Shown: positions 26,401 through 56,900 of the stretch, piece by piece
How the letters are laid out: each line of letters begins with the position of its first letter
Position numbering within the stretch: the first letter of the stretch is position 1
NCBI GenBank assembly: GCA_013115145.1
Contig: JAAPAO010000050.1
Span: forward strand, 38,784 to 102,783
Length of the DNA: 64,000 bases
Source: Perkinsus chesapeaki ATCC PRA-425
Taxonomy: Eukaryota > Protista > Perkinsozoa
Reading direction: 5' to 3'
Position numbers and translations under genes: made by a program
Notes under the pieces: model-generated
What the model saw: the letters and a program-made list of their open reading frames with translations, nothing else
The model's database searches: none
What the model was told of the DNA's origin: nothing

Positions 26401-29400
26401 GGAGTGCCCCACCTATTTCCGCATTCCCTGCGATAGACCCTTCTATAACGTCTTTTACGACTCGGCAATCATGGAGAGTGTAAAGCTGGTTGTCCCAGAC
26501 AAAGCCCCATTTTTCACTGGTACCTACAGTAGACCTCTACTGCTGCGTGCCTGGCCAACTTGAGCCCTTAGAAGCTGCCAAAGCGTATGAAGGAGAAATG
26601 GGCAGCTTTGCAGCAGTACCGACGTAATTTAAAAACAGTAAAATTTACACTCGTTAGCATTTGGACCGAGCCGATACGCGTTCACTGAATTGATCTTTAA
26701 AGGCTACCAAGGGACCTAAGCGTAATAGAGGGCCAGGGGATAGTGAAATTTATTCCTCCAAGATGCATGTCTTCCAAGGCTGCAATGAGTTGGTGATGAG
26801 CGTGTATGTCATGCCGGAACCCTCTGAGGCTCACAAATTTTACAGCCTTTTTCAGCCCCTTTTTTCTTCTTGAAAAGTATAATCACACAGTGTGATTCAC
26901 ACTGCGATAATCACAGATGAACAGGCCTTCTTCAGACTTACTTTCTCTATGGAGAGACACGGTATACGTTTCTGGCTTATGGAGCAGACCGGTACAACCA
27001 CAGCCGTATACTTCTGCGATATCCCCGAGCTCTCTCTCCTTGGATACCCCCACAATGTCGAGACCCGTCCCATTCTCAGCAACTGTCATCTCCGATTGCC
27101 GGGTAATGCCAATCTATAGCGTATCGTTTGCGCGGCTACCATAAACAATCTCACTTTAAGCGGCCTCCGAATCTTGAGCATCCGTAGGATATCTGTTTGC
27201 ATTGTACAGTCGACAGGCATATCTGAGTAACAGTTCAAATGCTCATACACGATTAAATATCCCGACCTGATACGGTCTCAATAAGATCTCCCGGGCGCAA
27301 GCCCATCCGCCTAGCAGCACTACCAAGTTCTACCCTCTTCACTCGTATACGGTCATCGCGACAGCACCAGTCGAAAGTCGCACCAATTCCTGATAAAGGG
27401 TTACCCGCGACTGGCAACATCAGGAAGGGACTCACCTGTGGACGACCTATCTGGAGATTCAGTGAGCTTCATCGTATAATGCAGCGATCCACCGATCTTC
27501 GGCTTCTCTATCTGCAACTGTGATGATTCCGGCAGACCGCCCTTGAGCAGCTTCTCCTTGCGGCAGACAAGAGCCCTCTCGAAGACAAATACCTGAGGAA
27601 GCAAATATAAATTACAGCCACCACAACTGAGGAGCCATAGGGGCGCGTCGAATGCTCCAGAACTATGCATTTGAGGTTTCTTCTTGGGAAAATATTTCCG
27701 AACTAAATTCCCGTCGTATCCGGGATTCCTAAAACAATTTAATAACGCTATATGTCTTCCTCCGATGAGAGGCCTTAACTAGCCTTAACGCAGTGGTCCA
27801 TGATGAGAGACCTACCGCCTCATAGTCAGTGGCACGCAGAGCATCAGAGAGGTCATCGCCAAACTTCCCATCGACAGAGATCAGGCGGTCACCAATCATC
27901 ACAGTTTCGCCTTTCGTAGACTTGTTGTATAACCTGCATAAAACTCATTCAGAGACTCTTCCAAAACTAGTGCTCACCACAGGGGGCTTTTCTTAGTGAT
28001 CTTGGACAGTACTCGATGACCGGCGCCCCAAAATTGAGGATCCCAATTGAACCCCCAAGGAACTTCGCAGCTAACATTTGCCAAATTGCCGTTCGACCAG
28101 GAGCGAGAGGCCACCTTTTGCGCTGTAGGATTACACTGTACTGAAATGACCCCTCAGAGGGCGAGAATTTCGGGGCTGTAGGTGCCCGCTGATGCTCTTT
28201 CTTCTCGAGGCTGAGCCACTTGGATGTCCGGGGAACTGCAGAGACAGTATTGATCGCCGTAATGATATTTTCTTGTGCCAAAATAAAGCCGAAGAATGCC
28301 CAAACACTTACAGAATGGATCAACCTCCTTTTCGGCAATCTCTCTGGCAGCTGAAATTACAAAACATATCAACCAACGAACAGGCCAATGCTCACCTTCC
28401 AGCCTCTTCCGTTTTAGCCTTTCCTTCGCCTCATTTGCCTTGGCTCTCTCAAAGGCTTCTATTGCCTGAGCACGAAAAGGATGGCGCCGAAGAGAGCGTA
28501 GCCCCGCGGTGAAGTTACATCGAGCTCTCGCCGCTCCTGTTCCCTCATCTTTCTGTAGTGCGACTCTAGAAGCTTCCGTAAGTACCCGGCGTGGGAATCA
28601 ACGTACTTCTCTTGCTGAAGCAGCAGAAGGTAATAGCGTTCCAAACCGCAATGGGCCGCGTGAGACTTCTGGGAGTCAAATTTATTAACATCTATCCAGC
28701 CGGCAAAGCCTACTCACTTTTGCGCTGAGTTGCTATCAGAAAATCGTGCCGCTTAATTGCCAGTTTCTACGCCCCAACAGAACGCGGTCTCATCAACAAT
28801 TTTTCACGCCTTACCGAGCGGGCGAGAGAGTCCTCGAGTGACGTCACGGGTATCTTCATAGGAGCCGTGACTCCAGGGACGACAGAGCCGATCTGCAGCA
28901 GAAGCTCTTGTTAACTGAATATCTTTCAATCTCACAGTAAAAGCCTCTTGGACTTCCTTTATATTTTCAGCAACTCTTTTACTGTCTTTCGTGACGTCTT
29001 CAAAAAGTAACCGCTCGTTTATACCTGCAATGCAGACGTATCCTCAGAAAGCCACTCCCCCAGGTAGTCCTGGCGAATTTCCAGTCTTAAAGTTCTCACG
29101 CAACTAAATCCCCCCGGAAGAGAGATAAGTGAATTTACTATGGCTAATTGATGAGGGCGGCGGTTCTGAGACTAAGGCGAGGAGGGCCAAGTTGGCCCGG
29201 CCAACATATATTGGAACACCGCGATATACGCTGCTGTTGCCGTGAAGCACAAAATCGACCAAGATGATTGTGGGTTGTAGCCAAAGCTAGGCTTAAGTCA
29301 TTCTGTTTGAATCATTCGATGTATAATCGAGATCCTATCTCATTTATCTAAAGTATTGTGTTGATACTTAGACTATAGCCGTTCCCAATATACCAGAGAT

Positions 29401-38330: not shown

Positions 38331-38367
38331 GGCTTGATTCAAGCCGCTTGAAGTTCAAGCCTTGAAC
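38331..38367. other. Two overlapping 22-nt footprints (targets ggcttgaa and gcttgaac)
   Basis: g-gcttga-t-tcaagc-c-gcttga-a (38331-38352) and g-cttgaa-g-ttcaag-c-cttgaa-c (38346-38367). Confidence 0.85.
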
Positions 38368-38708
38368 GAATTATTCATTCGCCACGCCCCTAGCCACTAC
38401 TGTTGCGAGGATCCACGATGTGAATGAGCGCACAATCAAGGAATAAGCGGCACTCTGGCCCATAACGAAATAACTGTCAGTGCCAGGCTGACACTGCCTA
38501 CTAGTTGACAGTTCACTGATCGTTTTAAGATCCGAGGCAACGGGCCTTCGCTTGAGTGTCAGGGGTGTGGTGTCACCCCACTTATTTGCGGCGCCAACAC
38601 TATATGATTTCCGATCCACGAAATAGCCTAGGCTAGGCTTACCGCACAACTAGTGGGTGAGGGTGAGGTGGACATTTAACGGCCGGGAACAAGAGTTCCG
38701 GGGTTGAA

Positions 38709-38730
38709 ACGTTCACTGAACGTGGTTCAG
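38709..38730. other. 22-nt footprint with one substitution, target acgttcag
   Basis: a-cgttca-c-tgaacg-t-ggttca-g. Confidence 0.7.
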
Positions 38731-38944
38731 TCTAAACATGCAGTTTGTGAACTCATCTGCAATCCTTTCACAGTGTTGGAAGATACTGGAGCGATATTCG
38801 AAGAGCTCTATCGTCCGGTTGGAAGGTTATGGCGCGGAGGGCCTCCTTTGGCGACCGCCAAAAATAGCTTAAGAAATACCTCAAGCTCATTCTACTATTT
38901 TCATTCTGAACTCCTGGGGCTTTGCCAACTCAGTCTTTTCAGCC

Positions 38945-39649
38945 ATGTACTTCATCATCCGTATGCTCCCTCTCGTGTGCTTCCTGTGCACTAAGGCAGA
39001 GATAATGCTACAAGACGCCACAAATGGAGAAGGGTAGGGTATTCAGAGTCCGTAGTTGCTAAAGTCAACGTGACGCTGGTAACTAGTTTCTCTTCTCTCT
39101 TCTGTCACCACTCCTTGTGGCGACTGAGTCTCCGCGACTCCCTCGTTATTCCCATTCAACATCTTCAGGTACAATTCAAGCTCGCTAGCCGGCGCTGACG
39201 GTACAGAAAGGCGTTTGGTTCAGTTGCGAGCGTGTGTTTTGAAAATAGGTTCATGCTACGAGAAGCCTATCGGGAAGTGCTACTATAGCAGAATTGCTGG
39301 AGGTGTTGCGGGATGTCACTGCTCGCCACCGGCTCTAGTCGGATACACTACGGTATGTTCCTGTAGCTCGTGAACTAGAATAGTATGTTATTTCAGGCCG
39401 GGATGTTCGATATTGACTTCGTTGTTTGCACTACACCATGTGGTGGAAATACGTGTCCCAAAGCTCCTAAGGGGACGGGCAGTTGTACCAAAGTGTTCTC
39501 CAGATCGATGTGCGTTATCAACTGCAATGACGACGAAGTAGGGTATCATAAACGCCAGCTTCATGGATTCGGAGTGTCAGGACTGCCCAGAAGCTGCCGT
39601 ATGCCACAACTGGGGAGGAGCTACTAAGAGTTGCATGTACCGTCCCTAG
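38945..39649 (+). CDS. Secreted 13-Cys protein family, copy 2 (5 exons)
   Basis: MYFIIRMLPLVCFLCTKAEIMLQDATNGEG|YNSSSLAGADG|SCYEKPIGKCYY..GCHCSPP..|..VCTTPCGGNTCPKAPKGTGSC..MCVINCNDDE|DCPEAAVCHNWGGATKSCMYRP*. Confidence 0.88.
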
Positions 39650-40917
39650 CCCACATCATAACTCGTCGGCGGTCCTTAGTCAGAAGTTTTCAACTCCTGA
39701 CCGTTCATGATGAACGGTTCATCATTGCGGGTCATTTGGAATGGCCCATTTATCTGTCGTCGCATCCGATGCGTCTTAGAAATAACCTTTTTTTGACTAG
39801 AGGCTGCTCCAATGTAAGGCCTCTAGTCACTTGTCATTCATCATTTCATAGTCACCAAGTGTCGGTTTCCTCGCCTACTCAGCTATCTTAGGGAAGAACC
39901 GGTTACCGGGCCTCACGATTTAGTCCCTGGCCAAATATCAATCTGATCCTATCGGTCCTCCGATTGTTGAGTTGTCAATTGGTTTCGCCACGATTTATCC
40001 TTCTTCTCATTCTGAGCTCAGGGAGCTCAATGCCATTGAGTCATTGGATTACCGTTGCCGTGGCGGCAATGCCGTCGGATACACCACTTCTGGTATTCCA
40101 TCCGGGTAGTGAATACAAGGTTGTCCAACTCAAAGAGTCAGACATATATGGAGCCGAAACATCCCGTGGATGCACGGTCCGGGGACAGCTCCTTCCACAA
40201 TAGTCATCTGAGAAATGTTTCCCGCGCTTTACCGCCAACATCAGCTCTTCAAATGAAGACTTAACAACTATCGTCATGTTCTTCGCGTCCGGTACCCTTT
40301 TGATCTGTTAGATCAAGTTGACTCTTTGACAAAGAGTCTTTGTCGAACATGCTCATAATGCTGCATACATCCGGCATGGCGCAAGGAGTCCCCGCACTTG
40401 GTCAGTATGTTGCACAGCAAGCTTTGTTTCTGTTCTCATATGATCACGGAACGATTTGTGGGGATTCACAGTACATCGATCTCTCCACCTTGACTCGGGG
40501 CGGGGGATCTTCAAGACCGGCTCATAGGGCTCTGACTGTTAAATACCGTGACGGGATCTTCCGCTTTCCTTTAGCGGTCGGAGCCATAGAGTTAACTACG
40601 CATGGCTCACTACGCATGGCTCACCGCACAGACCGCACAAAAAATGTATTCGGGTTAAGTGGGTAAATGTGGCATTTCATAACAAAGGCTCCGAGTTGAT
40701 TTTTCAATCACAGGTGCAGCAGTCTGAAGAGCAGTCCTTCAGCCCCACCCGGTGGTCAAACACACAAGAATGACCTGGATGGTTTAAAATCCTCGCCGCA
40801 TAGACCATGCGGTCGGGAGCGGATCGCCTTCGATAGCGAGGAGCATTGTTTAGGGCGTAAGCTTAACACTATTCAACGACCACTTCCAAGCATTCATCGA
40901 TGTTATACTCGCTAACC

Positions 40918-41633
40918 ATGTCCGGTATGATCTTCCTAATGTACATCATGGGCACCAAGGGAGAACTGAGGGTACAAGATATTGGAAATAGGTAGGAAAC
41001 CTACCGTGGGTAGGAAACCACGTTTGCTAATGGGGCGAGGTAGGAAACGAAGACTCCGTTATCATCCTAGCGGCTAGGACCTAGCCAGATTGCAGACTTT
41101 AGTCCCTTCTTCCTGTATTTGCATCACTCGCTTGCATAACTTGTCAGATACAATCCAGTCTCGATCTATGGTCATCAAGGTGGAGTTTTTCGTTTTCGTT
41201 GCGAATGTGTATGCCGTCAAAAGGTTCATGTTATGAGAAACCCTTCGGCACGTGCATCTATAACCAATCCGATGGCTATGTATACGGGTGTTCCTGCTCG
41301 GCACCAGCTGGTGTGATTTACGCTCTGGTAGTTTTCTAGCCCGGACTGAAGGCATTCACCTGATCTATCTTCCAGACCAAAGATTATGAAATTGACGTGG
41401 TCGCTTGTACTGATGATTGTGATGGAGATTCCTGTCCTAATGCACCTAAAGGGACGGGCAGTTGCGACCCAGTGGGATATGTGGAAACAGCTTGCCTGAT
41501 TAACTGTAAGGATGACAAAGTAAGAAAATATGATTATGAACCCGATCGATGCCTTACACGGTAGGACTGCCTTGAAACGGCCATCTGCTACGACGGGGGA
41601 GGACCTTCTGGCGTATGTATGTACCGTCCCTAG
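40918..41633 (+). CDS. Secreted 13-Cys protein family, copy 3 (5 exons)
   Basis: MSGMIFLMYIMGTKGELRVQDIGNR|YNPVSIYGHQG|SCYEKPFGTCIY..GCSCSAP..|..ACTDDCDGDSCPNAPKGTGSC..ACLINCKDDK|DCLETAICYDGGGPSGVCMYRP*. Confidence 0.88.
41065..41086. other. 22-nt footprint, target tcctagcc (intron 1 of Cys-rich copy 3)
   Basis: t-cctagc-g-gctagg-a-cctagc-c. Confidence 0.85.
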
Positions 41634-42469
41634 CTCTGCTCATAACTTGACGATGAGTGGTTAGCACAGTCCAAGATTATCCGGCACAATGTGGGTAATT
41701 TCACATGGCCTATTTCTCTTTCTGCGCGTTTAACGTGCCGTAGCCAGTCTCGACTAGGTCCCTAATCGTTTATCGTTAATCATTCTATACCATCACAATC
41801 GGGCCGATTGAGAGGCCGAGTGAATTGGTTTCAGGGTTTGCCTAACCCTTGTGGTTCTTTTGTTGTTGAGTTGTCAATAACTTCCCCGCTACTGAGTCAA
41901 ATTTCTCTAGATGAAGTCGGCCATCACCCGACAGTAATTCGACTGTGATTTTCCCTATGGTATTCTGATTTCGTCTCCGAACCTCTGGTAACTCATCTTG
42001 AGGTACGGACTCCTATGGTAGGAGTTACTAACCCCTATAATTCAGAGAAACCATTTAGTAGTATTGGAGATTGATCGAATTTTTCGCTGAAGAGTTGTTC
42101 CAATTTTATGCCAAATCGAAAGGTTTGGGGATTAATTTAATCCATATTTCATATGAAAATATGGAATTCGTTTCACAGCCTGTGGAGTTTTCCTGAGGAA
42201 AACCTGTGAATCCTGTGAATCACAGGATCTAATTTTCCTCAGGAAAACTGTTCCCCCCTCGACCGGCAAGCGAGGGATGTCACAACTTGCTCTGCTCCCA
42301 CTCGATATTATCGAGTGAGCCTGATAGCAAATATCATCGCTTGCCGAGTCGGTAACGCTAAGCGTTTGCTCATACCACTGATATAAGCCAACACTCACGG
42401 TTATAGGCTTCGTATAGGCTGTATGGTTCACGACGGTATCTTGATAGAATATCAAATTGATATTATCAA

Positions 42470-42496
42470 TGATATTATATCAGTGATATAATATCA
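42470..42496. repeat. Perfect palindrome, 13-bp arms, 1-nt spacer
   Basis: tgatattatatca-g-tgatataatatca. Confidence 0.85.
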
Positions 42497-42572: not shown

Positions 42573-42594
42573 GCGCTAGACTAGCGCCGCTAGT
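42573..42594. other. 22-nt footprint, target gcgctagt
   Basis: g-cgctag-a-ctagcg-c-cgctag-t. Confidence 0.85.
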
Positions 42595-42925
42595 CGGATG
42601 GATCATTGAAAGTGCCACTCCCTGAGGACGTCGCCTTCCCCTATTCGCTGCTACGCCTCAATCGGCGCTCCTACGGATATGATATCGTCGCTGAACGGTT
42701 TGGTCTGAACCCAGCGAACAGGAGCTAGCGTCTCGGTGTGCATCGCCTTATTTTGTCTAGCTTCTGCTTTATTAAGTTCGCGTCGCCAACTTGGCGATTC
42801 GGACCCACAACACTTGCGGTTAATCCATGCCGTGGATTCCACGGTGGTAACCCATCCGACCCAGTACAACTACGTCCAGTGGCCAGCTGGTCCATTCTTA
42901 TTTTTTTCATTAGTGATGAGCTAAT

Positions 42926-42947
42926 GAGTCATAATGACTCAGTCATT
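42926..42947. other. 22-nt footprint, target gagtcatt
   Basis: g-agtcat-a-atgact-c-agtcat-t. Confidence 0.85.
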
Positions 42948-43301: not shown

Positions 43302-43323
43302 CACTCGAATCGAGTGACTCGAT
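43302..43323. other. 22-nt footprint, target cactcgat
   Basis: c-actcga-a-tcgagt-g-actcga-t. Confidence 0.85.
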
Positions 43324-43430
43324 CCACTAGCTTCATAAACGGGACAAGCTTGAGTGGGACTGTTTACACAGGCACAATGGGACATCAAGTAACACAAACT
43401 TAGGACGTATCGGCCGCATCCAAAGGACCT

Positions 43431-43703
43431 TCAATCATAACACAATCCTTTCATAGATTTCTCAACACGAGCGCCCTGCATTGCAGGACCTGCAATGCCC
43501 AATTTGCCATCGCAAAACGATACATTTTTTGGCCAAGATTGAATCTTGGGTTGTACATCTTCGGGAATAATCCAAAATTGTTCCCGGGAACCGGTAACAT
43601 CCCCAGGAATAATTTGCGAACAAAAATGGGAAGAGTTTGAATCACGGTCCTGTGCATTAGCAAGCCCGAAAAACGCACAAAGCATCGAGACTAACACCGT
43701 CAT
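43431..43703 (-). CDS. Hypothetical secreted protein (first exon or short gene)
   Basis: Signal-like MTVLVSMLCAFFGLANA|Q followed by a Cys-containing chain. Confidence 0.45.
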   Translation of the reverse strand: MTVLVSMLCAFFGLANAQDRDSNSSHFCSQIIPGDVTGSREQFWIIPEDVQPKIQSWPKNVSFCDGKLGIAGPAMQGARVEKSMKGLCYD

Positions 43704-44297
43704 TGAACTAGCTACTTCCTGGTCATTGAGTAGGGGAACACGCATCATGGATTATGCATGCAGTGGTAGCCTACCACTGGTAGGTTCGATTTATACTCCG
43801 TACCGGAGAACCAGGCCACCCCTAAGCAACGCTGATGCGTAGAAGCGTAGGAAAGATCTTTTGAGAATCTTGAAGACTCTCGAAATACAAGCGTGTGCTT
43901 GCAAGCTGGTCTTTTCTGACCATTATGATGAATACAACAGATAGTTTGTTACAGATTAATTCACAGATTCGCTCGTGGAGCCAATCATCGAAAACCCACT
44001 ACCAACCGCAAAGAATGTGTTGTTGACAGTGTGTCACACAGTTCAGCGGGTCTATATTGTTGTCTCTATAATGCTAAGTTAGCATTGCTTACTTCCCAGA
44101 ATATTGCGGCACGGCTCGGCACCCGCTCTCCAACTCTCTGCCTGATTCTCGATGTACGAGGCACTTATTTCAAAACCTGCAGCTCTGGTCTAACCAGAGC
44201 TGAGAACCCCGTGTCACCGAAGGACGCCTACAGTGAGGTTCTTACTGCACCAGGCTCCAGCAGATCCTGCAGCTGTATGTTTTATCTGTTTCTGATG

Positions 44298-44346
44298 ATC
44301 GCTCCGGAAGTATGATTCTGGGCCAGAATCATACTTCCGGAGCGAT
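44298..44346. repeat. Perfect palindrome, 24-bp arms, 1-nt spacer
   Basis: atcgctccggaagtatgattctgg-g-ccagaatcatacttccggagcgat. Confidence 0.95.
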
Positions 44347-44516
44347 GCAGTTGCGGCCGTGCTCGTCTGACAATGTGTACCTTACAAAGGTATGAAATTG
44401 TTGATCGACTGCATAATACGAGATATGATGCCATGCAGTAGATGACTCAAGTAGGAGAAAAATAAGAGCAAGTTCGAATTATAGATGGGCACGTTCCGTT
44501 CTCCGGTGTTGAGTAC

Positions 44517-44538
44517 GGTACGGGCCGTACCGTACGGC
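44517..44538. other. 22-nt footprint, target ggtacggc
   Basis: g-gtacgg-g-ccgtac-c-gtacgg-c. Confidence 0.75.
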
Positions 44539-45072
44539 GTACGGCGAGTTTATCGAGGTGTTACGGAGTGCGGTACGGAGTACGGAGATGGGACATTAAG
44601 TTCACCTCTGGTGGCCAATGAACGGTCGAGGAGAGTAGAGATTGATAAGAGAGATATCCCGGACCATTTAAACTTTTATTTCTCTGAACTATTTACTTTC
44701 ATTCTTTTCGTTACTTATTGCACGCGCACCAATGCGGAAAGAATGCACATGCGTGCATAATGTTCCGAACATTGCCAGCGAGGACACTATGTTGGTTCTG
44801 GGTACTTGGCACTTGACTCGAACACATTCCAACGCTTAAATAACACTCCGCACCGTACTCCATACTGGCCGTACCCTGACGGATGCTCAAGTATAGTTCG
44901 AATTCTATTTTCGAATCGTGCTGATATCGCTCTGTTCCACCGGGGAGTTCCGGCGGGAACACCAAAGGAACATGCGTCGCCCCCGCGACGCTTTTTTTCA
45001 TTGCCCGGATATTTGAACCTCTCCCGAAGCCTTAGTTCCAAACATAACCAACTAACATGGCTATCTCTCGCC

Positions 45073-45125
45073 TACTAATGTACATCGTGATCATTGTCTG
45101 ACAATGATCACGATGTACATTAGTA
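45073..45125. repeat. Perfect palindrome, 26-bp arms, 1-nt spacer
   Basis: tactaatgtacatcgtgatcattgtc-t-gacaatgatcacgatgtacattagta. Confidence 0.95.
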
Positions 45126-46863
45126 TACATATACTCACTATATACTGACTGTACATAGTGACTCACTATTACCTACGCAGCCCAAAGCTGCTGGAAGGCT
45201 GCAGACTGCAGTAATGGTGTATGCTATTGCAGGAATGGCAAAATCTGCTCCGACAGTTCCTGCTACTGTTCTCAAAGTGGCGGGCTGTGCTGACACAGCA
45301 CTGCTGAGACTATCATTCAGAGCAGCGCCTGCTGCAAAGGTGCACTATGTACACTTGCTTCAATGGACGGCGCTCAGCCAGTGGAGGTCTCATTCTCAAT
45401 ATCTCATTTCATAGTCTCGCCCTCAAGCCAAACCCTTCCTAGAGAAGCGCTTCCCATAATAGTGTTCTTAACAGTACACGTTGTTCATTCAATGAACTCC
45501 GTTGTTATATAACTCGACGAGACTTTTCAAGTATTATGAGCCGTTGTGTGTTGAGTTCGGCCGTTGAATGCCCAGTTGACATGGTTGCGTCCTTCCGCCG
45601 TAAGTTAACAGCCACTCGCGCGTCGATAGTGCGACGTTGGACATTCGTATGAGAAATTGATGACTTATAGTGTGAGTTTCATACTATAAAACTATAGAAT
45701 TTACAGCATGACATTCACGCCGCGGGCAATACCAAAGTCACTTTGGCAAAGTGTCCTCAAGGATCTCAACCCCAACGGAAATGAATCTCTCGAGTGCCTC
45801 GACCTTCACGAGCCGATAGTATCGGCCCGATACTCAATAAACACAGCAGAGAGGCTAGTGCACGGGTTAATCACCTGGTACCAGCGGTTGAGTTGAGTCG
45901 ACCAGACACGACCAAGGTTTGGTTACCAAATACTTCGACGCATTAGCGGTACAAGATTGACATCGAAAATCTATGGAGGAATGAGGCACCGACGGACGGT
46001 TACCGACCCCGGCAAGAACCGTGGCCCCGCCAAATACTTTGATTTCCGACTTAGGTCGTAGACTCCACCGCTCGCAGCTCATCCCATGCATCGTTCACCG
46101 AGCATTGGGATAGCCGACCACAGATCATTGAAAATGTCTGCGGGCCGCCGATGTATCTTTCTAATACCTGCTCTGGGGACAGCCTCCCCCACAACAGTCA
46201 AATGGGAATTGTTTTTCCGTGTTTCGCGCCGTCAGGATGCGGGAACACGTTCGGAGGGGAGTTGATAACTATTTCCATCTTCTTTACGCCCGACAGACCT
46301 CTCGATCTGATAGTCTATCAATGATAGGTCAAGTGGACCCTTTGTCAAACACGCTCATCAGGCGGCATACAGCCTACAGGGCGCAAGGATCCGCACATTT
46401 GGCGCACGTCACTATGGCGCACAACAAGCTCTATTCCTGTCAGTAGACGATCACAGAATGATCTGTGGGCATAGCGTTTGCGTTCAAGCGATCTCGTTGA
46501 CATGATTCAGGGAGAGGAATCTTCGATGACGAGTCCTAGGCCCTTGAGTCCTCACTATCGTCCCCGGAATCTTCCGATTGCCAAAAGTAGTTGGGGACAT
46601 GGAGTGAACTAGGAATGGCTCACCGCACAGCCCGCACAAGAAATGTATTCTGGTTAAGTGGATATCTTATCCGGATAAGTGTGGTATTTCGGATACGAGG
46701 TTCCGAGTTGATTTTTCAATCACAGGTGTAGCAGTCTGAAAAGAAGTTCTCCTCTATAACCCGGTGGTCAAACATACAAGAGTGGCTTGGAAAGATGCGT
46801 ATCCTCTTAGGCCTTACGGCAGGGAGTGTTGCAAGGACTCGTCGACAGCATGGAGCATTGCTT

Positions 46864-46885
46864 AAGCTTAGTAAGCTTAGCTTAC
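46864..46885. other. 22-nt footprint, target aagcttac (60 bp upstream of Cys-rich copy 4 ATG)
   Basis: a-agctta-g-taagct-t-agctta-c. Confidence 0.8.
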
Positions 46886-46944
46886 ATTATCCGAGTCCAC
46901 TCCGATCACTTCCAAACCTTCATCAACTCTATACTCGCTTAGCC

Positions 46945-47628
46945 ATGTACGGTATCATCGGCATGATCTCCCTCGTGTGCATCCTGGGCACTAGTGGAGA
47001 ACTAAGGGTGCAAGATATTGTGAATGGATCGAGGTAGGAAATAGAAAGTCCGTCATAAGAGAGAGATTCTAATCCTTCCTTCCTGTACATTCGGGCTTCA
47101 ACATGAAACTCTCATGAGCTACACGTGTCCAGCTTATGTGAATTCTTATTGGCAGGTACAATCCAGTCTGGTTTCGTGCTCCCCAAGGTGAAGTATTTGA
47201 CTCCGATAGTGCATACGTCGTTATTAGGCTCATGTTATGAGAAGCCCATCGGCAAGTGTGTCTATAACAAAGATGCTCATGAGTTAGAAGGATGTCAGTG
47301 CGCGGCACCGGCTCTCGTAGCATACGCTCTGGTGAGTTCAGCGCAGACTAGTGCCCCTTACCGAATTTTTCAGACCGACGATGATGACGTTGATGTCGTC
47401 GTTTGCACTGTCCAGTGTGGTGGAAATCCATGTCCCAACGCACCTAAAGGGACGGGCAGCTGCAACGCAGTGGGCTCCTTATCATTGTGCATGATCAACT
47501 GTAAGGACGACAAAGTAAGAAAACGTGTTTATTGGCCCAATAAATGCGTAGCATGATAGGACTGTCCTGAAACGGCCGTCTGCTACAACTGGGGAGGACC
47601 TTCCAGCAGCTGTTTGTACCGTCCCTAG
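46945..47628 (+). CDS. Secreted 13-Cys protein family, copy 4 (5 exons)
   Basis: MYGIIGMISLVCILGTSGELRVQDIVNGSR|YNPVWFRAPQG|SCYEKPIGKCVY..GCQCAAP..|..VCTVQCGGNPCPNAPKGTGSC..LCMINCKDDK|DCPETAVCYNWGGPSSSCLYRP*. Confidence 0.9.
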
Positions 47629-47674
47629 CTCTGCTAATAACTTGACGATGAGCGCTCAGCCCAATCCCAGACTA

Positions 47675-47696
47675 TCCGGGAGTCCCGGACCGGGAC
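47675..47696. other. 22-nt footprint, target tccgggac
   Basis: t-ccggga-g-tcccgg-a-ccggga-c; the paralogous site near 41680 has a single tccggcac. Confidence 0.92.
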
Positions 47697-47980
47697 AATG
47701 TGGGTCTTCTTAGATGGCCCATTCCTCTTTCTGCGCGCCTAACGTGCCTTAGCCAGTCTCGACTAGAACCCTAGTCGTTTATCACTAATCATTTCATACT
47801 CTCCACAAGCAGCTTTCCTCGCCTAGGTGGCTAGGGTGGAAAGGGCGATTCCAAGGTTTGCCTAATACCTGTGGGTCTTTTATTGTTGAGTTGTCAATAA
47901 CATTCACGATCCTGAGTCAAAACGCCTCTTAGAATGGATTTCACATGGGCATTGGACTATAAACTCACACACACGCGCCT

Positions 47981-50900
47981 CTAGATGAAATCGACCACCA
48001 TTCGAGTCAGACATTTCATCTTCTGACTTCCTCCAAGAGCTTCTGGCAACTCCTTTGAGTCAGTGCCATAGAAAGGTACTCCATCTGGATTTAGTCTGTA
48101 CAACGGCTTGATAAAAGCCAGTTTGTCCAACCGTTGGATTCCAACGACCCGACAAGTGCTCATTTGACTGTGGTGTATCAAACTCAGCACATCTGGCGAC
48201 GCAGAAGAAGTTATTAGTTAGCTGCAGTTTGCCTGACGTTGTCGTAGAAGGCGGCAAGAGAGCTTTCATCACAAGGGATGTCCGGAGAATTAACGGCATT
48301 ATGGAATACGTACGACATCTCTCTAGCTTCTTCAACGATTACCTGTCAAACAAGGTTGGAAATACAATGGACTGCATTCGATGAAGAAGTGCTCATGGAT
48401 CGAGCTTCCCAAAAGTGGCCCACTTTTGCCACTTCTGCCACCCATCTGGGGAGGTGAAACAGCATTATAGATCCTTTCACTATTATAATTTATAAATTGC
48501 CCTACCAGGTAGGGCCCACCTCACCTCTGGCAATCCAGCAATTTTCGCGACATGCATAGCATGGCTTTGTGGGCAGCGACCCTTCGTGAACTTATACAGG
48601 AAGGTCACTGCGCGAGTCACTGGATCTACAAGGCATGCTTGATGGTATCTAAAGTTCAGACTCTGAGCATATTATCGCATCAGAATCGAGCCCAATGTTG
48701 GAAGGTCTTACAGTGCTGTATTGGTGAGGGTATGGTCCTCGGCTAATTGATGGTAGTGTGTGGCAAACAAAGCACGGCATCCTATCTGTTCAGATACCCT
48801 TTCTAGGACAGCATGAGCGATAGCTGCACCGTCAAAAGTAGATGTCCCGCGACCTGATGTCAACAGGTAGTATCAATAAGGTCTATGAGCCGAAGATTAG
48901 ACTCGAATTAGGTCCAGCAGGTTATTAGAATAGGTTACGAGACCTTACCAAGTTCATCGATGACTGCTAATGAGTGTTTAGTGGCATGTTGAAGGACAGC
49001 TCCGGTTTCTTCGAGTTCGATCAGGAAAGTACTTTTATTTTCAAGAATGGAGTCTCGAGCACCGATCCTCGTGAATATGCGATCCACTGGGGTCAAATGG
49101 AACCTGACATACCGGAGTTGTATTTGAAAATCACCAAACAAAAACGCATGCTGGAGAAGAAATAACACTATCCTTACGACGAGGCTGGAACGCGACATCC
49201 AAGTTGCGCGATAATGACAGCTGTGGCGCTGAGGCGAAGCACTGTACCTACGAAAGACATGCAAAACAAGGCTGGCTGCCATCTGAGCTGCAGAGTCAGC
49301 TGCGAGAGAGACAAAAATAGTTCTTAGTCGTACTTTTGCCTCCCATGTTGGGGCCGGTAACGAGGAGGGTAGTCGGACCATTATTATTGCCCATTTCAAC
49401 AGTGTTAGCGACGAACTCTCTACCCGATCGAGAGAGGATGGCCTCTTGAACCTGAATTTACGGAATAACGTCACACGACGTCCTTACAAGCGCCTACGGG
49501 ATGTCTGCCGTTTTGCAAGTTTAGAACGGGAACATCGGATTCGTCTGGATCCACGATACATGGCCGGCACATCGGCCCAGAACCGGGTTGGGAAGCCTCC
49601 GAAAGCGACAGAAGACAGTCTAGTGTTGCCAGTCTGTTAACCTGGGAATTACCAACCCTTTGAGGGCACTCGAGCAACACGCCGGCTCTCACCATTTGTT
49701 GCAGACGTATCGTGTGTTTGTGAAAGTCTTTGAAGAGCTGAGCCATAAAAGGATAAAGACAATCCTTCATTTGCTCTTCAGTTTTCTCCAGCTCATCAGT
49801 CATATCTCTAATCTAATCAGATTAACAGATACCCAAACCACGCAGCACCGGCGGTTCACCTCTTGAGTGAGGAGCCTGACATAGCCTTTCCTCGTACTTG
49901 ACACCTCCAAGCCGTGTTCTTCGGTATTACGTGGGACACTACGCTCAGGAACCTCTATCTCATACCTACCATGCTCCCGTAAACAGTTGAGATTTCGCGG
50001 CCTTACCTGTATTTTACGCTGACGTATTTTACATCAGATGCTTTACAATCCTTCAAGTTTTCACGGCAAATAACTTTAAGCTCCTTTTGCAGATCTGCCT
50101 CAATACTCGCTATCTTAGCTCTCGCTTCGTCGTATGTCGGATAGCAACCTACGAGCCTTAATGGCAGCACTCTCGGGGAATAGGGGAAAAGCAACTTCCC
50201 AACGGACGGCAAGTGACACTGATCCTACTCAAGCTTCATTTTTGTACACAAAGAACATACTTTGATCTTCAAAAGATTTGTTCTAGTGAACCTCGATGGT
50301 TATCTACTTACACTAGACCATATAAAATGCCCAGTCCTGTTTAGTGGAATCTCGTCACATAAATTTCACGGGTCAGATTTCAGTGGAGTACAAAACTCTG
50401 CCCAGGGCGGTACAGGCAGAGGTAATCCTTTTTGTAAAGTTATACTCGCCCTCGCATAAGAATACACTTTCATCAGAAAATGGTGCAGTACAAACTCACA
50501 CACTCCCAGCGGTAGCGACACCTACCTGGCGCGGGAGAGTACCCGGTCGTTTCATTCCCCTGTACTCTGCTTCCCAGATCGTGAAGAATATTGTCAATAT
50601 ATCCTAGCTCTTCCGACGGAACTAGTTCATCTAGCAAAGCCGGTAATTCCGCCCCACAGTCCCGGACCTGACAAAATGTACCAAATCACATTACCACTGT
50701 AACTACTGCGTGAAGTTGAATAACGGAGAGAGCCGGTTGCATCCTTGATATCACAAGCGGGATAAGACGTACCATGGCAAGGCATTCGTCAGCCTTTTTT
50801 AGGGATGTCAATAACTCCATGAACTGTGCAATCCGGGAGGACTCAACCTGCAGCTCGCGCAGTGACAGATATAGCAACAAGTGTACGTCTCACTTCAGCG

Positions 50901-53900
50901 TAGAGAACGGCTTTCCTTTCCATTTGCAAACCCAATGCAAAAACTCTGTTTTGGCGTCGCTCAATGTCTGGCAGCTTACCCATCATAGACCGCAGGTCAC
51001 TGAGTGTGAAGCAATAATGCGCCAGAAAGTTTCCAGGGGAAACAAAGTTGAAAGTTGTGCATCGTTATTAACGATGCACAACTTTTTGTTCTTCTGGTTA
51101 ACGATTCGTTAACCAGTAGAACAAAAAGACGTTCACGGCTGCCAGAAAGCACCGTAGTGGGAGAAGAGCTAGGCCTTTTCTAATCATACTCAATAGCGGA
51201 ACCGTAATATGAACGCTTATACATGTGATGGCATATCGCCTTTTGTGGTTACTAAGCTCGGCAATGTCCGCTTATCGATTAACAGCTTTCTAGTTAGATT
51301 TCAGTATCGAGTAAATCAGTTAGAGCCTGCCGTCGGCTGCAGCAGGAATTCATGGTACGGTTCCGGATCTCGCTCGCTTGAAGAGGTCAAAGGCTAACGG
51401 GCAGGAGCAGGATTTACGCCTTCCATGATTTATTAGTGCATGGAAAACGTGAACGCCGTACTTACCGAACTAAATCTCCTCTTTCGAGGAGCCAGTCGAC
51501 CACATCTAGCCTTCTGTCGATATCTGCCTTCCTTCTCATGGGACAGCACACCCATTGCCTCAAGAGACGCTTCCCAAATGGTGTAACCGTATGGTCCAGA
51601 TGGTCAAGTAATGAGCCCTCCACTTTCCCGTCCGTGTCTAACGAAAAGAATGAACAGCAAGCGGAGGTATTGCTCACTTCGAAGAACCTCCAACTGTTCC
51701 AAGGCATTTGCATCGAGAATCAGTCCACCACCACCCGCGTCGGCTGTTTCCAGTCTCTCCCAGGTAGCGAAGGAGGTAACCTAGATAAAGTGCAACTTTT
51801 CACAACCGGAGAAACTAACCAACTGATAACAGACTATTATTAACACTGTCAATTTAACAGTACAACACGGTTATATGATACCCGTTGCTAAGATGGTAGG
51901 TGCAGTGAGTTATGTTTTCAAACTGAAAATTTCAGTTCACACAAACTTTCGCATCCTGCGCGAAAGTTCCCCCGAATTTCAAGAATGATAATGATGAAAG
52001 TTTTGAAATTCTCCGGTTTTGCTCACAGTTTGGGCCTCAGACGCGCGGCGAGGAGATATCGACAATCGGGTCTTAATGGTCCGGTGAGGGCTGAATGGCT
52101 ATACCAAGCCTATTCGGGGATTGCAATCAGAGATGGGCACAACTGCGTATGTTACGGTCCCGTTCAGTACGAAGAACGTTGATACGACGCGCCATCGTAA
52201 CCGTATAGTAAATTCGAAGTGATGTGAGTACGGGCGCGTATTCGGATCTGAAGGTTCCACCTCGGAAGTTTTCGGGTCCTCGGGTTTATAAACCCATAAG
52301 ACGCTATTTCTCCGAAATCCTGGAGAAGACGGAGAAGCACTACGAGTGAGTCACTGGGTAAGGCTTTCTGTCTACGTCGTAGACTCTACGACTTCACGAT
52401 GAACTCTTGCCGCTGGGCTTCACTTGCCACTGGCAAGTTGCCAGGTGATTTGTCAACATGCAAATGAGTTGAGGTAAGCCTAGACAAGGTAGTAGAAGCT
52501 ACTATCTATGTGAGTGTACTTGGGTATGATCCGATAACAGTAATTGTGTGAATAGCAATGGACAGGAGCCATCGGCCACGGTTACACGCAAAGTGGACCG
52601 GTGAACGTTATCCTCGACTAGAAATTGTATCAGCAGTGGTAGAACATCACTGATGTTGTTCGCACATTATATGAATAATAACAATCGCTATTCTCCGGGA
52701 ATAATGACACCAACAGGGGCGGTGCCATGGAGGAAAGGTTGCCCCGGTAGTGCACCGACCTCTTGCATTCCCTGAGGTTTTCTGGAAGAATAAGGCGGGC
52801 TCCGTTTGATAAGATCACCCGGCTAGCACACTGCGTTGTCTGGGCTAACTACAAACTCACCAATGCTTTCGATGTGGTTGTCACCGAGTTCCGAAGAGTC
52901 ACTGGCAAAGAGGGCACTTTCGCGGCTCACAAAAAGCCCTCTGAACAGGATCCATCTATGGAGAAGATGGTATCGGAAGAGAGTACACTAGTCCTTAGTA
53001 CAGATTGCAGCTCACTGCCACCGGTAAGTCAACTGGTCGGATGAGTGTCGATCCACCCTCGATGGTCCAGATGGTTGGCTCTGATGATGAATCGTCAACG
53101 GAGGTTGGACACCAGAGAGAAACGAGGGGCAGTAAGGGGGTGGTCGCGTGAAAGTTACGGGTTGAAATCCTCGACAGCAGAGTGGCAAAGCCGATTCGGC
53201 TACCCGAAGGCGGCAAGACAGACTTATATACAATATACAAAATAACCGTCTAACCTTACAATATATTCTCAATAAATATTTTAAATATAATTACATTCTC
53301 AATAAAATATATATTCTATTACAAGTACGAGATCAAGTATAGACTATTTTCAGGTTAGACGGAGAAGCTAAAGATCTGCATAAAGCCTTGAGTTCAACGT
53401 TCTATTCCGCAGACAACAATATACTGGCCATAAATGCGTATGCGCCTCTCAAGCTCCTCAAAGATATCGAGGATTCCGTCATCGGCCAATCACTGTTCGA
53501 GTCGCTGACCGAGATTGAAAAAGTATACAATCAGTTATATTCCATGGATGTTCTCGAGGAAGCCTCGAGAAATATTGTACTTTCAAAGTGAGTGCTCATG
53601 TCGGTAGGATCCCTCGATTTGTTCGGGCCGTCAGACAGCGTTTAGAGGTCCAACAGGTATAACCTATACTTTGTGGCCTATATATTTGTGATTTAACACC
53701 GCTCTGTGAAGCCTCCTTGATCAGGCTGCAAGCTGCACTGGATGGAAATTCGCGACCCACGTTACAAATGCTGAAGCTCGTTCAGCTCAGCATGTCCTGA
53801 AGGAATAAAAAAGGTATGATTTTCTCCCATTTTCCCCTCTTCGCAGTAGGAAATCTGATATGGAGACCTTCACTAGCATGATGGTGGGCGTATTTGAGCG

Positions 53901-56900
53901 AAGCGAGCGAAGCAACAGTCGACTTGTCTGATGCTTAAATCATTCGTAATTGTAGAGTCTACAATGTAGACTATTGGCGTATGTAATTAAGGACTAAGCC
54001 GGGGTTCTTGCATGTCTTCCGGTTCAACTGGATGACGCCACTGTGGTGTCGCTGCCAATAACTACTCATAATTTACTACTCGTGAATCAGGACAATCGAC
54101 AACTCAACTAAATACAACAAATGCATTTCCGTAGACAAAACTGTTGTGCAACATGACTTAAATCATCAAAGTTCAATGCCTCCATTTAGCAGATTTTCTG
54201 ACGAAATCGACTGCACATAGACTCAAAGTCTTAGAGCGGGACTCAGTCCCGAGCGACTTATTATTAAAAATCAACCGATCTTGGGACAGCTACATTAGTT
54301 GATGCTTGTGCCATGAGGCGAATGGTTCGGCACTCCCGGCTCGTGAGGAAACTACCCTTTCTCTGTCAAAAATCAGGACTTTTTCGCCAAATTTCCCAGA
54401 CCTCCATAAATCTGGGAACGGAAATCTGAGGAAATTTGGAAACCCGAGAACCCTGGAAGACAGGCGTGTAGGCCAACCTGAACATTACCCGAACCATTTG
54501 CTGTATGTACTCGGAGCATACAGCAATGGTACCTGGAACTGAAGAGTTCTGTACTAAAGTCTTTCTGAATGGCACAAGCTACTATCGAGAAGACGCTCGA
54601 TACTGAGGAAGGACAACGCTTCCGCGTATAATAGCCAATACATCGAGTGCCACCTTGAGAAGAGAGATTTCAATGGCTCCGAAGCCCTAGGGGGGACGTA
54701 AATCATGGAGTGAGACGTATAAGTTGAGTATCTCATAAGCTAGATGTAGAAGAAGGTTATTATCAATATTATTACATCTCTTGAGTATGAGCAGCCCAGG
54801 AACGCTGGCTCGCTAGTAGCGCTGATCTGAGCCCAGTTCAATATACCGTCGGTATAATACCGATAACCAGCCACTGTCACATGAACCCACATAATTCAGC
54901 TGATGATCAGATTGACATGCAGAACGCTCAGCTGAGGTAAGCGTTCTACATATCAATGAAGAAACTGCGTGTATGGTGCTACTTCATGTAAAAAAAACTC
55001 ACATGAGTTTATGGGAATGGTTTACACTGGCAACCAAGTTTTCTCTGAAAACTTTTCAGAAATCCTAACTGTTTGTTGGTTAAAGAACTAACCAGCGGTG
55101 AGCCTAACTTCGCCGTACGACAAGCGGGTGGCCCGCTGCGGGCCGATAGTCCACAGTTTGGACCCCAAACCCTCCCACCGCAAGGAAGGTGGTAGAGTAG
55201 CAGAGAGGAAAGACACGCCAATCTATGGTGGAGATCTGATCGGGTCGATTATCGGGACGCGCCGCGTGTCCGCGTGCCACACGCGGAACCGAGATGCCGC
55301 GGAGCACGGCGGCTTTTTTGTGGGCGATAAGAGAAACCTTTGCCCTCAGCATTGCCTCCGCGGAAGAAAGAGATAATTGGAACAGTTTCTATCTTTTCTT
55401 GATCCAAAATCCGCTAGGCGCACACTTGAAGGCGCAACTCGTTCATGAAAGTTTCGAATTTACACAGAATCAGACGAACGAATATCTCCCAAGACGATAC
55501 CGTGTTCTCACCGATTCATAGAGCATCGCTTGTCGAAGGTAGGAAAGGATAGCTCCACATGCCTTCTGGACCGGAGACGGCTCGGCGGTCTGAAATCGCG
55601 AGGCCACGATCTGCTGAACGAGTTGTTGAGACTTACCAGATCGCGCGCCGCATCCGAGGGAGGGTCCCAGTGCTGCCACTGGGTGACAGACGGATGAACC
55701 GCCAGGCTCTGGATGAGCCGATTCACTGCTGGTGGAATCGATTCTGAAAACACGTTCAAAACACCTTCATCGACTTATTGAATAAAAGTTTGATTACAAA
55801 ACCACTTTGGAGCATCGTGGAAATGGCTGAGCCGGCAAGTTGGCGTTTCAAAACGAAATCTCCCCACGACTCACTCTTGTCTGCTAGCAGCTCTCTCGGT
55901 TGTAGCGTGATGAGAATTGTACGTAATAACTGTCTATCGGGCTTGTCAGCGAACCAGCCATATTTGAAGGTAGATGTCGCACAGTCCACAACACAGCACC
56001 CGAACGAAAGACGTTCACCAAATGTTCCTGTAGAAGACACAAGACGGTCTCCCTTCAGAGGAGTCCCCTGAGCGTTCTGGCTACCTTGCGTTGTAGATTC
56101 ATCCGCGAACCAGAGAGCCATGAGATAATTGGGTTGAGCCGGTGATGGAGAGTTCTTCAGCATCGCTTCGTGAGTCAGCGTTCCCGCAGAGTGTGCCTGA
56201 AGCATCGATAACAGTGATTCCGGTCCGGAATTCAAGTCATTCCGGAATTTCCGGAATGACTTGAATCCACAAACTTGCGTTGTGAGAGTTTCTAGTGTAG
56301 GGATTTCTGTAACAGAAAACCCACTGCAATATGCAATGGCAGTCAAAGACGGCTGCGACAGCTATCGATAATGCGATAACTCACCTGACATGCTTCCCGT
56401 TTAACAACAGCATCGCTTTTCCTGCCCTGGTCCTTTTTCATCTCTCCAACTCTCTCCACTTGCTCCACCACGACTGTTCGGAATCCGGCATTCACCAGCA
56501 TGCTGCTATATTCGTAGAGAGATACCTTCGACAGGGAGAAAATGAATCATTTGCTTGCTCTCATAGGTCATTCGAAATGGCCAATAAAACAAGCTCTATC
56601 TACAAACATTCTTCTTCATAGGTCATTCGAAATGGCCAATAAAACAAGCTCTATCTACAAACATTCTTCTTCATAGGTCATTCGAAATGGCCAATAAAAC
56701 AAGCTCTATCCGTAATCATTGCTAAGGAATGGTCCGGTGGGTGGGTAGGTGCTGAGCCCACTTCATATAATACATGCAGGAGACGAAGATCCAGGGACAA
56801 TCTCGCAAGATAGGGAGAAATTCTCCTGGAGAAATCGCCAAGCCACTATGGCGTTGAGCAGAAGCTTTTATCGAGGCTGGAAAGAAGCTGGAATATCTGT

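Follow-up and report, generated by a model that had tools for sequence, protein, structure and literature searches.

What process leaves scars of one fixed form in the DNA of a protist? Such scars dot the non-coding DNA of Perkinsus chesapeaki, a parasite of shellfish. The window considered here, 64 kb long, forms the end of P. chesapeaki contig JAAPAO010000050.1. A full scan of it for the pattern xA + revcomp(xAy) + Ay, in which xAy is a word and |A| the length of its inner part, found 22 exact copies at |A| = 6, compared with 0 sites in 30 dinucleotide-preserving shuffles. The 22-nt scars in the window are confirmed as real. The exact copies are given below with their 8-bp words; no strand is assigned to any feature in this text.

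21045..21066, exact 22-nt scar, word GTCCATCC (scan)
26882..26903, exact scar, word ATCACACT (scan)
29184..29205, exact scar, word GGGCCAAC (scan)
38331..38352, exact scar, word GGCTTGAA; overlaps the 38346 scar, targets 1 nt apart (scan)
38346..38367, exact scar, word GCTTGAAC; forms a nested pair with the 38331 scar (scan)
39702..39723, exact scar, word CGTTCATC, within paralogue copy A; at its right border it shares the homologous base with the 47675 scar
40322..40343, exact scar, word CTCTTTGT (scan)
41065..41086, exact scar, word TCCTAGCC (scan)
42449..42470, exact scar, word ATATCAAT; starts a run of overlapping decayed copies (42462, 42469, 42476)
42573..42594, exact scar, word GCGCTAGT (scan)
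42926..42947, exact scar, word GAGTCATT (scan)
43302..43323, exact scar, word CACTCGAT (scan)
43763..43784, exact scar, word GTGGTAGG (scan)
44517..44538, exact scar, word GGTACGGC (scan)
45732..45753, exact scar, word CCAAAGTG (scan)
45812..45833, exact scar, word GCCGATAC (scan)
46864..46885, exact scar, word AAGCTTAC, within copy C; the corresponding place in copy B holds a decayed and shortened version
47675..47696, exact scar, word TCCGGGAC, within copy C, some 50 nt beyond the stop codon on its 3' side; copy C is 14 nt longer here than copy B
52370..52391, exact scar, word GTCTACGA, located between MutS exons
52423..52444, exact scar, word CTTGCCAG (scan)
53950..53971, exact scar, word TTGTAGAC (scan)
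54842..54863, exact scar, word TATACCGA (scan)

The word length is restricted to 8 bp, with 22 copies vs 0 for words of 6, 9, 10 and 11 bp and longer; the single 7-bp match (|A| = 5) is an echo of the 44517 scar. The window scan gave 0 matches at |A| = 4, 7, 8, 9, 10, 11 and 12, no enrichment at |A| = 3, 0 matches with x or y of any other length, and no other enriched spacer. At the two central bases, 22 of 28 A-n-rc(A)-n-A cores conform to both complement rules. When footprints in the window are written as xA-comp(y)-[m nt]-[n nt]-comp(x)-Ay, m + n is exclusively 6 (22 vs 0), and short classical end-joining footprints (m + n < 6) number 0 vs 22 of the 22-mer.

Mutated copies are also present. 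Sites with 0, 1, 2 and 3 broken constraints number 22, 14, 12 and about 23-25 in the window, vs 0, 0.05, 0.1 and 1.8 in shuffles. This roughly flat decay series matches the expectation under steady scar production. Sites with one or two mismatches include the following.

1763..1784, 1-mismatch scar, 3' of UGGT
38709..38730, 1-mismatch scar
40026..40047, 1-mismatch scar
42776..42797, 1-mismatch scar
42823..42844, 1-mismatch scar
43474..43495, 1-mismatch scar
44071..44092, 1-mismatch scar
48125..48146, 1-mismatch scar
48500..48521, 1-mismatch scar
51915..51936, 1-mismatch scar
55038..55059, 1-mismatch scar
55123..55144, 1-mismatch scar
2072..2093, 2-mismatch scar
Starts at 11597, 38068, 39119, 40055, 45287, 45483, 46307, 51839, 55149 and 56813, further 2-mismatch scars

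A preliminary description of this DNA had reported at least 15 exact scars and one 1-mismatch case, at 38709. All 15 starts that it listed are exact and the 38709 case is as claimed, but the number was an under-count, and the scars at 21045, 39702, 40322, 42449, 43763, 45732 and 45812 had been missed. The sharp peak at |A| = 6 over dinucleotide-preserving shuffles that it anticipated is found within the window. It had placed the scars between 26882 and 54863, but decayed copies extend from 1763 to 56813. In terms of distribution, 39 of 46 non-redundant sites lie within 36-56 kb, recognisable scars number about 2 per kb across 20 kb, and the gene-packed part of the window is avoided. Conserved exons had been described as free of scars. 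This holds for the 22-nt form, which is absent from the four Pfam-recognised MutS exon ORFs, but an extended scar (56217-56266, see below) lies inside the domain II exon ORF, in its 5' part, upstream of the domain match.

An assembly or sequencing artefact has in its favour that library chimeras can create palindromes, and is for practical purposes already refuted. Logan contigs from two studies (X1, 2020; X2 and X4, 2022) have 0 differences over 42000-47900 and 50600-56500, which amounts to 11.8 kb of independently sequenced scar-rich DNA with 16 exact scars. Given this identity, the scars are not an artefact of one assembly, which the preliminary description had named as a finding that would refute its reading. 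The decay series, the avoidance of the gene-packed part and the finding of scars in three P. olseni assemblies, where they are polymorphic between haplotypes, also argue against an artefact.

Relative to a single 8-mer, every scar adds 14 nt, as seen at three sites, one in a paralogue and two in P. olseni. Unoccupied sites with a single 8-mer had been named as something to look for in other strains or haplotypes, and the first of them lies in the window itself.

41680..41687, empty site, single 8-mer TCCGGCAC, paralogue copy B; copy C has the 47675 scar there

In P. olseni, the exact scar at 16484 in L005 is matched by a single GTTAGTGG in L003, the flanks differing at 1/32 nt, and the L003 scar at 6626 corresponds to a single 8-mer in L005. 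Among the indels between the two P. olseni haplotypes, those of 14 nt form a secondary peak.

The scars also have a preferred target. T at position 2 together with A at position 7 (T2/A7) is found in 44/92 8-mers, vs 26% expected (p = 7e-6), and A at -1 with T at +9 in 42/92 targets. The Hermes target is 5'-nTnnnnAn-3', with 8-bp duplications (PMC10368747), and the T2/A7 preference is that of an Ac/Hermes-type hAT target. Paralogue copies A and C carry two independent scars at one homologous position (39702 and 47675). This shared position and the nested pair shifted by 1 nt (38331/38346) point to strong hot spots, which are not accounted for by 8-mer preference alone.

Considering longer structures, all perfect palindromes in the window with arms of at least 9 nt (20/20) have a single-base, odd centre. 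Even palindromes are at chance level and none has an arm of 9 nt or more. Some of the odd palindromes belong to rarer extended and one-sided footprints, overlooked in the preliminary description.

23236..23336, extended scar, word GTTGTTAA; odd palindromes with centres 23256 and 23318, arms 20 and 18
51051..51126, extended scar, word ATCGTTAA; palindromes centred on 51068 and 51105, with arms of 17 and 11 nt (the latter 21 nt if one mismatch is allowed)
56217..56266, extended scar, word ATTCCGGA; centres 56224 and 56248, arms 7 and 18
44298..44346, lone odd palindrome with 24-nt arms, a candidate for a hairpin footprint of one side
45073..45125, lone odd palindrome with 26-nt arms, likewise a candidate for a footprint of one side
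61467..61499, lone odd palindrome with 16-nt arms
9140..9167, the sole case outside the 8-bp class, |A| = 8 (10-bp word) with 1 mismatch and the same grammar

The last of these sits within a cluster of three odd palindromes. The three extended scars keep the 8-bp rule, with arms of 7-20 nt, and one 8-bp word common to two long palindromes is expected 0.0016 times by chance. Their joints are microhomologies of 2-3 nt or filler: TTT where the inner arms meet (51051..51126), a 2-nt (AT) overlap of the inner arms (56217..56266), and a 23-nt filler between the palindromes that repeats neighbouring 8-9-mers (ACCTCTCA, CTCAAAGCT; 23236..23336). The inner arms of all three continue into the inverted flanks, which only unfolded hairpins account for. 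A footprint of the Transib/RAG type was considered too, and does not fit the window, with its lack of enrichment at |A| = 3 and of even palindromes with arms of 9 nt or more.

With a probability of about 0.8, in our estimate, the scars are made by a hAT-like element that inserts and excises, its two flank hairpins being opened well away from the tip and, in most cases, annealed across the 8-nt duplication. Excision through hairpins was already the reading of the preliminary description, and every prediction of it that could be tested on these sequences held: a length peak at 8 bp only, centres that are complements of the outer 8-mer bases, long palindromes with odd centres only, hAT-type nTnnnnAn targets, a single 8-mer in related sequences, and extended scars. 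Insertion of the element would make an 8-bp target-site duplication (xAy ... xAy). At excision, the transposase would nick one base into each flank and join both strands to a covalently closed hairpin, whose tip would be the complement of the base that adjoined the element. For the insertion and hairpin steps we infer this from the geometry and from established hAT biochemistry. The cell would then open or resect the hairpins at least 8 nt from the tip, leaving 3' tails with the sequence xA-comp(y)-rc(A)-comp(x)... at the left end and its mirror image at the right. Because both tails would come from the duplication, their last 8 nt would be perfectly complementary; annealing of these and filling in of 7 nt per strand would give 7 + 8 + 7 = 22 nt, a net gain of 14. 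Longer tails joined elsewhere, by 2-3 nt of microhomology or copied filler, would give an extended scar, and loss of one side a single long odd palindrome. Scars would build up in weakly constrained DNA, by a process that appears still active within species-level divergence.

As for repair, the 22-mers by construction have 8 nt of homology between 3' tails at the joint. Uniformity of outcome and joints at microhomologies are observed, and annealing or alternative end joining, rather than classical end joining, is the repair route that we infer. The absence of heterogeneous short footprints is a matter of host repair and not of the transposase. Some observations count against the hAT reading. 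For a cut-and-paste element, such a density across 20 kb is very high, there are hot spots, and neither element nor transposase was found in the DNA examined. A search for elements with inverted termini (12 nt, at most 2 mismatches) between copies of an exact 8-bp duplication gave none in the 64 kb and the two P. olseni loci, which is little DNA, and no transposase domain was seen in 55 ORFs (45 from the window, including 20 in the scar-rich part, and 10 from L003). The near-uniform outcome is a further point, whereas to our knowledge every hAT system studied yields heterogeneous footprints; we found no described precedent for it in the literature.

This lack of a hAT element and transposase leaves some room, though not much, for the same two-hairpin excision and annealing repair by an element of another superfamily with 8-bp duplications (Merlin-like, Mutator-like, P-like or from an undescribed family). 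Merlin-related ORFs, as relics, occur in P. marinus (PMC8101967), and the Mutator-like Muta1 forms flank hairpins and duplications of 8-9 bp (PMC5499845). The duplication here, however, is strictly 8 bp, while Merlin and Muta1 give 8-9; for Mutator-like and Merlin duplications of 8-9 or 9-11 bp, the window holds no 9-bp class and, among 10-bp words, just the case at 9140, which has a mismatch. The T2/A7 target and a centre complementary to the adjacent base, the classic mark of Ac/Ds footprints, both favour hAT, and Muta1 excisions in yeast are more than 90% precise (PMC5499845).

It is improbable that a domesticated host nuclease cuts ordinary DNA into hairpins with no mobile element and that repair then makes the scar, an alternative already raised in the preliminary description. 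It would fit with about 70 scars that have no resident element near them and with hot spots that recur at one homologous site, and a hairpin-making domesticated hAT transposase, Kat1, is known (cited in PMC10368747). From the geometry, however, each of the two hairpins, left and right, would need a complete duplex 8-mer of its own. A single copy is not enough for the pair, so that an earlier 8-bp duplication, i.e. integration, would be required. Known domesticated hairpin-forming enzymes require specific recognition sites, unlike the many different words seen here. Replication template switching (forward, a jump to the opposite strand and a jump back) would leave a tiny inverted triplication; the scar is formally forward-reverse-forward, and the filler of one extended scar looks copied from nearby sequence. 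We regard it as very improbable, as no fixed length would be expected, yet 8 bp is the only one found, and it predicts neither single-base centres complementary to the outer bases, nor the T2/A7 preference, nor the odd centre of every long palindrome.

Compared with known systems, the scars resemble hAT footprints (Ac/Ds, Tam3, Ascot-1, Hermes) in the 8-bp duplication, the P-nucleotide palindromes, the nTnnnnAn target, the microhomology at the joint and the arms of up to about 20 nt. Ac/Ds footprints have palindromes centred on the complement of the base adjoining the element, use microhomology and reach arms of 20 nt in yeast; Candida hAT footprints are of 28 types in 128 events (PMC5873905). 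Unlike these many, mostly short types, most recognisable footprints here are 7 + 8 + 7, with tails annealed over the whole duplication. They are also natural, genome-fixed and extremely dense. With the coding ends of V(D)J recombination (RAG) and with Transib they share closed flank hairpins opened off-centre, which give palindromic additions. RAG and Transib nick exactly at the border, so that palindromes would be even-centred, and Transib duplications are 5 bp, unlike the odd centres and 8-bp duplication seen here. Homology of 2-3 or 8 nt between 3' tails and one filler joint recall microhomology-mediated or polymerase-theta-type end joining; here, in contrast, the homology would be made by the transposon's duplication once the hairpins unfold. 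Finally, as in the precise, homology-guided repair of donor sites after mPing and Muta1 excision, the duplication steers the outcome, but there the original site is restored, whereas here inverted copies pair and 14 nt are gained.

Excision footprints are usually too short and varied to recognise in a genome, so that cut-and-paste history is read only from retained copies. In Perkinsus, every excision seems to leave behind a mark of fixed form that can be recognised by itself. One could then count excisions and use decay to date them, learn target preference and hot spots from events in nature, measure the small-insertion load of one transposon family, and infer the way in which hairpin-capped breaks are repaired in this parasite lineage. 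A 14-nt gain shifts reading frames, and so the scars also bear on how Perkinsus genes are annotated and which are called pseudogenes. We put forward, tentatively, that nearly all hairpin-capped breaks in Perkinsus may be mended by annealing-type joining, each hAT-type excision becoming a readable, datable 22-nt entry. If so, scar trails like the one seen here, with roughly 40 in 20 kb, would come from a few locally hopping elements. In the dense stretch we estimate about one scar per 50 substitutions, and scar formation would then be a major source of insertions and of non-coding DNA growth in this lineage.

All 15 start positions listed in the preliminary description are exact instances of the 22-nt scar x-A-comp(y)-rc(A)-comp(x)-A-y, where x and y are single bases, A has 6 nt and the 8-mer xAy is the word. 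The case at 38709 has one mismatch, as was stated there. The figure of at least 15 scars held, since a complete scan of the window returned 22 exact instances. The expected sharp peak at |A| = 6 is present, with 22 exact cases against zero at |A| = 4 and at 7-12, and a single echo at |A| = 5. Changing the length of x or y gave zero instances in the window, and 30 dinucleotide-preserving shuffles gave zero scars at |A| = 6.

Sites with 0, 1, 2 and 3 broken constraints number 22, 14, 12 and 25, compared with 0, 0.05, 0.1 and 1.8 in the shuffles. This near-flat series is what would be expected from steady production followed by neutral decay. A mismatch-tolerant scan of other lengths gave one isolated case with a 10-bp word (9140) and echoes of 8-bp scars. 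Both complement rules are kept in 22 of the 28 A-n-rc(A)-n-A cores, where chance is 1 in 16. Of the footprints that can be written xA-comp(y)-[first m of rc(A)]-[last n of rc(A)]-comp(x)-Ay, every one in the window, 22 in all, has m + n = 6; the shorter classical types (m + n below 6) number 0.

Furthermore, there are 96 odd-centred palindromes with 7-nt arms, 37 of them outside recognised scars versus 3.7 expected, and even-centred ones with 7-nt arms are at chance level. The 20 perfect palindromes whose arms measure at least 9 nt are without exception odd-centred, and their longest arms reach 26 nt. Three pairs of long palindromes, termed extended scars, keep to the 8-bp rules as well: in each pair one 6-nt sequence both precedes the first centre and follows the second, and the base at either centre complements the outer base of the opposite side. 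Chance would give 0.0016 such pairs (107 candidate centre pairs).

Extended scars in the window
Centres 23256/23318, extended scar, arms 20 and 18
Centres 51068/51105, extended scar, arms 17 and 11 (21 with one mismatch)
Centres 56224/56248, extended scar, arms 7 and 18

The inner arms of the extended scars run on into inverted flanking sequence, which unfolded hairpins can explain and a simple triplication of the 8-mer cannot. Of their joints, one lies at a TTT microhomology, one is an overlap of 2 nt and one holds a 23-nt filler repeating two neighbouring 8-9-mers, a pattern suggestive of alternative end joining. One-sided long palindromes, candidate single-hairpin footprints, have no remnant of a second 8-mer copy nearby. 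A nest of odd palindromes at 42190-42250 (centres 42195, 42219 and 42240, the outer two with the common word TTTTCCTC) may be a scar that a subsequent event broke up.

The best reading, to which we give a probability of about 0.8, is that the scars are hAT-type excision footprints fixed through annealing over the target duplication. An element with an 8-bp duplication would excise by hAT chemistry and leave each flank as a closed hairpin, whose tip would be the complement of the base adjoining the element. Both hairpins would unfold into 3' tails complementary over their last 8 nt, and annealing with fill-in would produce exactly the 22-mer. In Hermes, the first nick is offset by 1 nt. Ac/Ds footprints are palindromes whose central base complements the one that adjoined the element (PMC5873905).

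The symmetrised target logo, built from 46 non-redundant sites, agrees with a hAT origin: T at position 2 and A at position 7 occur in 44 of 92 (expected 26%, p = 7e-6). The flanks have A at -1 and T at +9 in 42 of 92, and A is avoided at position 3. The Hermes target is 5'-nTnnnnAn-3', with 8-bp duplications (PMC10368747). Mutator-like or Merlin elements, in contrast, make duplications of 8-9 bp or more, and the strict 8-bp length found here argues against them. Hairpin excision of the hAT kind, as already proposed from the sequence alone, is thus supported by the 8-bp-only grammar, the odd palindromes, the extended scars, the target logo and the empty sites described below.

Described hAT systems yield many footprint types (PMC5873905), whereas the outcome in the window is near-uniform. 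The literature searched holds no precedent for this uniform repair, although a 7 + 8 + 7 product was possibly recorded in yeast or Ascobolus; the search found no paper on 22-nt scars in Perkinsus, nor on Perkinsus end-joining genes. The chemistry is known; the uniform outcome and the density are undescribed.

An empty site is found within the window, where a small cysteine-rich gene has three diverged paralogues: copy A (38.6-40.1 kb), copy B (40.6-42.0 kb) and copy C (46.6-48.0 kb). Their extents are 38600-40060, 40560-41960 and 46560-47980, with about 65-84% identity in repeated blocks; they contain introns, and the protein ends in CLYRP before the stop and has no Pfam match. Scar 47675, about 50 nt past the stop codon of copy C, corresponds to a single TCCGGCAC in copy B (41680-41687). 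Judged on such alignments, every scar adds 14 nt to what was one 8-mer. Copy A, too, has an exact scar, 39702, but on another word (CGTTCATC), with its right border at the same homologous base as scar 47675; two separate events hit this position. The nested scars 38331 and 38346 have targets 1 nt apart, and together with the shared site they point to hot spots.

An assembly artefact is ruled out by contigs built from the reads of two studies, one of 2020 and one of 2022, which span 42000-47900 and 50600-56500 with zero differences. The P. chesapeaki Logan contigs have no 14-nt polymorphism. The sole 14-nt discrepancy in the contig comparison, at 47680-47694, is copy B placed on copy C, that is, scar 47675 itself.

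As for gene layout, window position 1 is contig position 38784 and the last base is the contig end (JAAPAO010000050.1, GCA_013115145.1). ORFs of UGGT at 2435-6228 are part of FOL47_008079 by exact protein match, and the P. chesapeaki locus sequence retrieved for that gene (L006) is identical to the reverse complement of 1-6902, which fixes the contig position of window position 1. NCBI gene ranges were recalculated into window coordinates.

Genes and exons in the window
2435-6902, minus strand, UGGT (NCBI gene range)
7145-10443, minus strand, aminotransferase (NCBI gene range)
11171-13323, minus strand, mitochondrial carrier (NCBI gene range)
13933 onward, minus strand, Myb protein (NCBI gene range)
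48.9-57.3 kb, minus strand, MutS homologue (Pfam matches of exons)
57030-57251, minus strand, MutS exon, domain I (Pfam)
55756-56346, minus strand, MutS exon, domain II (Pfam)
51462-51713, minus strand, MutS exon, domain III (Pfam)
48935-49474, minus strand, MutS exon, domain V (Pfam)

The scars are concentrated, with 39 of the 46 sites within 36-56 kb (about 2 per kb) and one decayed scar in the gene-packed 2.4-18.4 kb. ORFs of at least 600 nt contain none. The absence of 22-nt scars from recognisable conserved exons held for the four Pfam-recognised MutS exons, which contain 0; an extended scar (56217-56266) falls in the 5' part of the ORF with the domain II exon, upstream of the Pfam match. 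The 4-kb gap separating the exons for domains II and III contains nine scars. This distribution would fit selection against gains of 14 nt, which shift the reading frame; local hopping or a regional preference for insertion perhaps also contributes. The MutS gap itself (51714-55755) has no recognisable MutS coding sequence and is intron-like, unusually long for the P. chesapeaki genome.

Several other features were observed. Within the aminotransferase range, 9140-9180 has three clustered odd palindromes (centres 9149, 9158 and 9171), the first two of which obey the scar rules for a word of 10 bp, with one mismatch; no other case departs from the 8-bp class. Through most of the gene-dense minus-strand region 1-36000 the GC skew is distinctly negative (-0.09 to -0.35 in most 2-kb bins); it is weak or slightly positive at 1-2 kb and 18-22 kb, about zero over the scar-rich 36-50 kb and within +/-0.08 up to 56 kb. 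Tandem repeats lie at 15003-15248 (15-nt unit, 16 copies), 56561-56710 (55-nt unit, 2.7 copies) and 63859-64000 (35-nt unit, 4 copies, reaching the contig end). A moderately repeated element of about 105 nt (43322-43426) starts immediately after scar 43302; its read depth is 5-6 times that of the sequence around it, and other contigs carry diverged copies. The period-3 signal was of no use as a proxy for coding sequence.

The syntenic P. olseni locus was taken from three assemblies (L003, L004 and L005), reached via the annotated UGGT protein; ORFs of 355 and 413 aa as queries matched either very small contigs of P. olseni or P. marinus or nothing in Perkinsus. L003 and L004 are identical, and L005 is 93% identical to both across 17.8 kb. 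No resident element with an exact 8-bp duplication and 12-nt inverted termini was found in the window, L003 or L005, and Pfam scans of 55 ORFs gave no transposase domain. Two candidate matches in L005 were rejected, being palindromic 8-mers within the long termini of a Tc1-like element. L005 (GCA_013115135.1) has at 14757-16324 a 1568-nt insertion missing from the L003 haplotype, TA-flanked, with the ends CAGT...ACTG and inverted termini that extend beyond 150 nt. In structure it resembles a Tc1/mariner-type element, and in size it is near the 1,563-bp TRT element from vertebrates and protozoa (PMC5630946). It contains two 22-nt scars (15408 exact, 15519 with one mismatch) and no long ORF, even with both collapsed.

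L003 also has, at 16961-17017, an odd palindrome that is perfect over arms of 28 nt, inside a 1353-nt segment missing from the other P. olseni haplotype. The indel spectrum between L003 and L005 has a secondary peak at 14 nt, with five events, two recognisable as scars. The remaining three (alignment columns 4808, 5658 and 10146) do not fit the scar grammar, and one includes an 11-nt odd palindrome, CCACA G TGTGG.

Finally, exact scars are found in P. olseni, at 17747, 18141 and 19057 in L003 and at 15408 and 16484 in L005. The empty alleles predicted for other haplotypes were recovered at two sites: where L005 has scar 16484, L003 has just one GTTAGTGG between near-identical flanks, which differ at one of 32 nt, and where L003 has scar 6626, itself with one substitution, L005 has the 8-mer once. 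Exact scars in P. olseni and two polymorphic sites indicate that two species or more share the process, and that it operates within species-level divergence.
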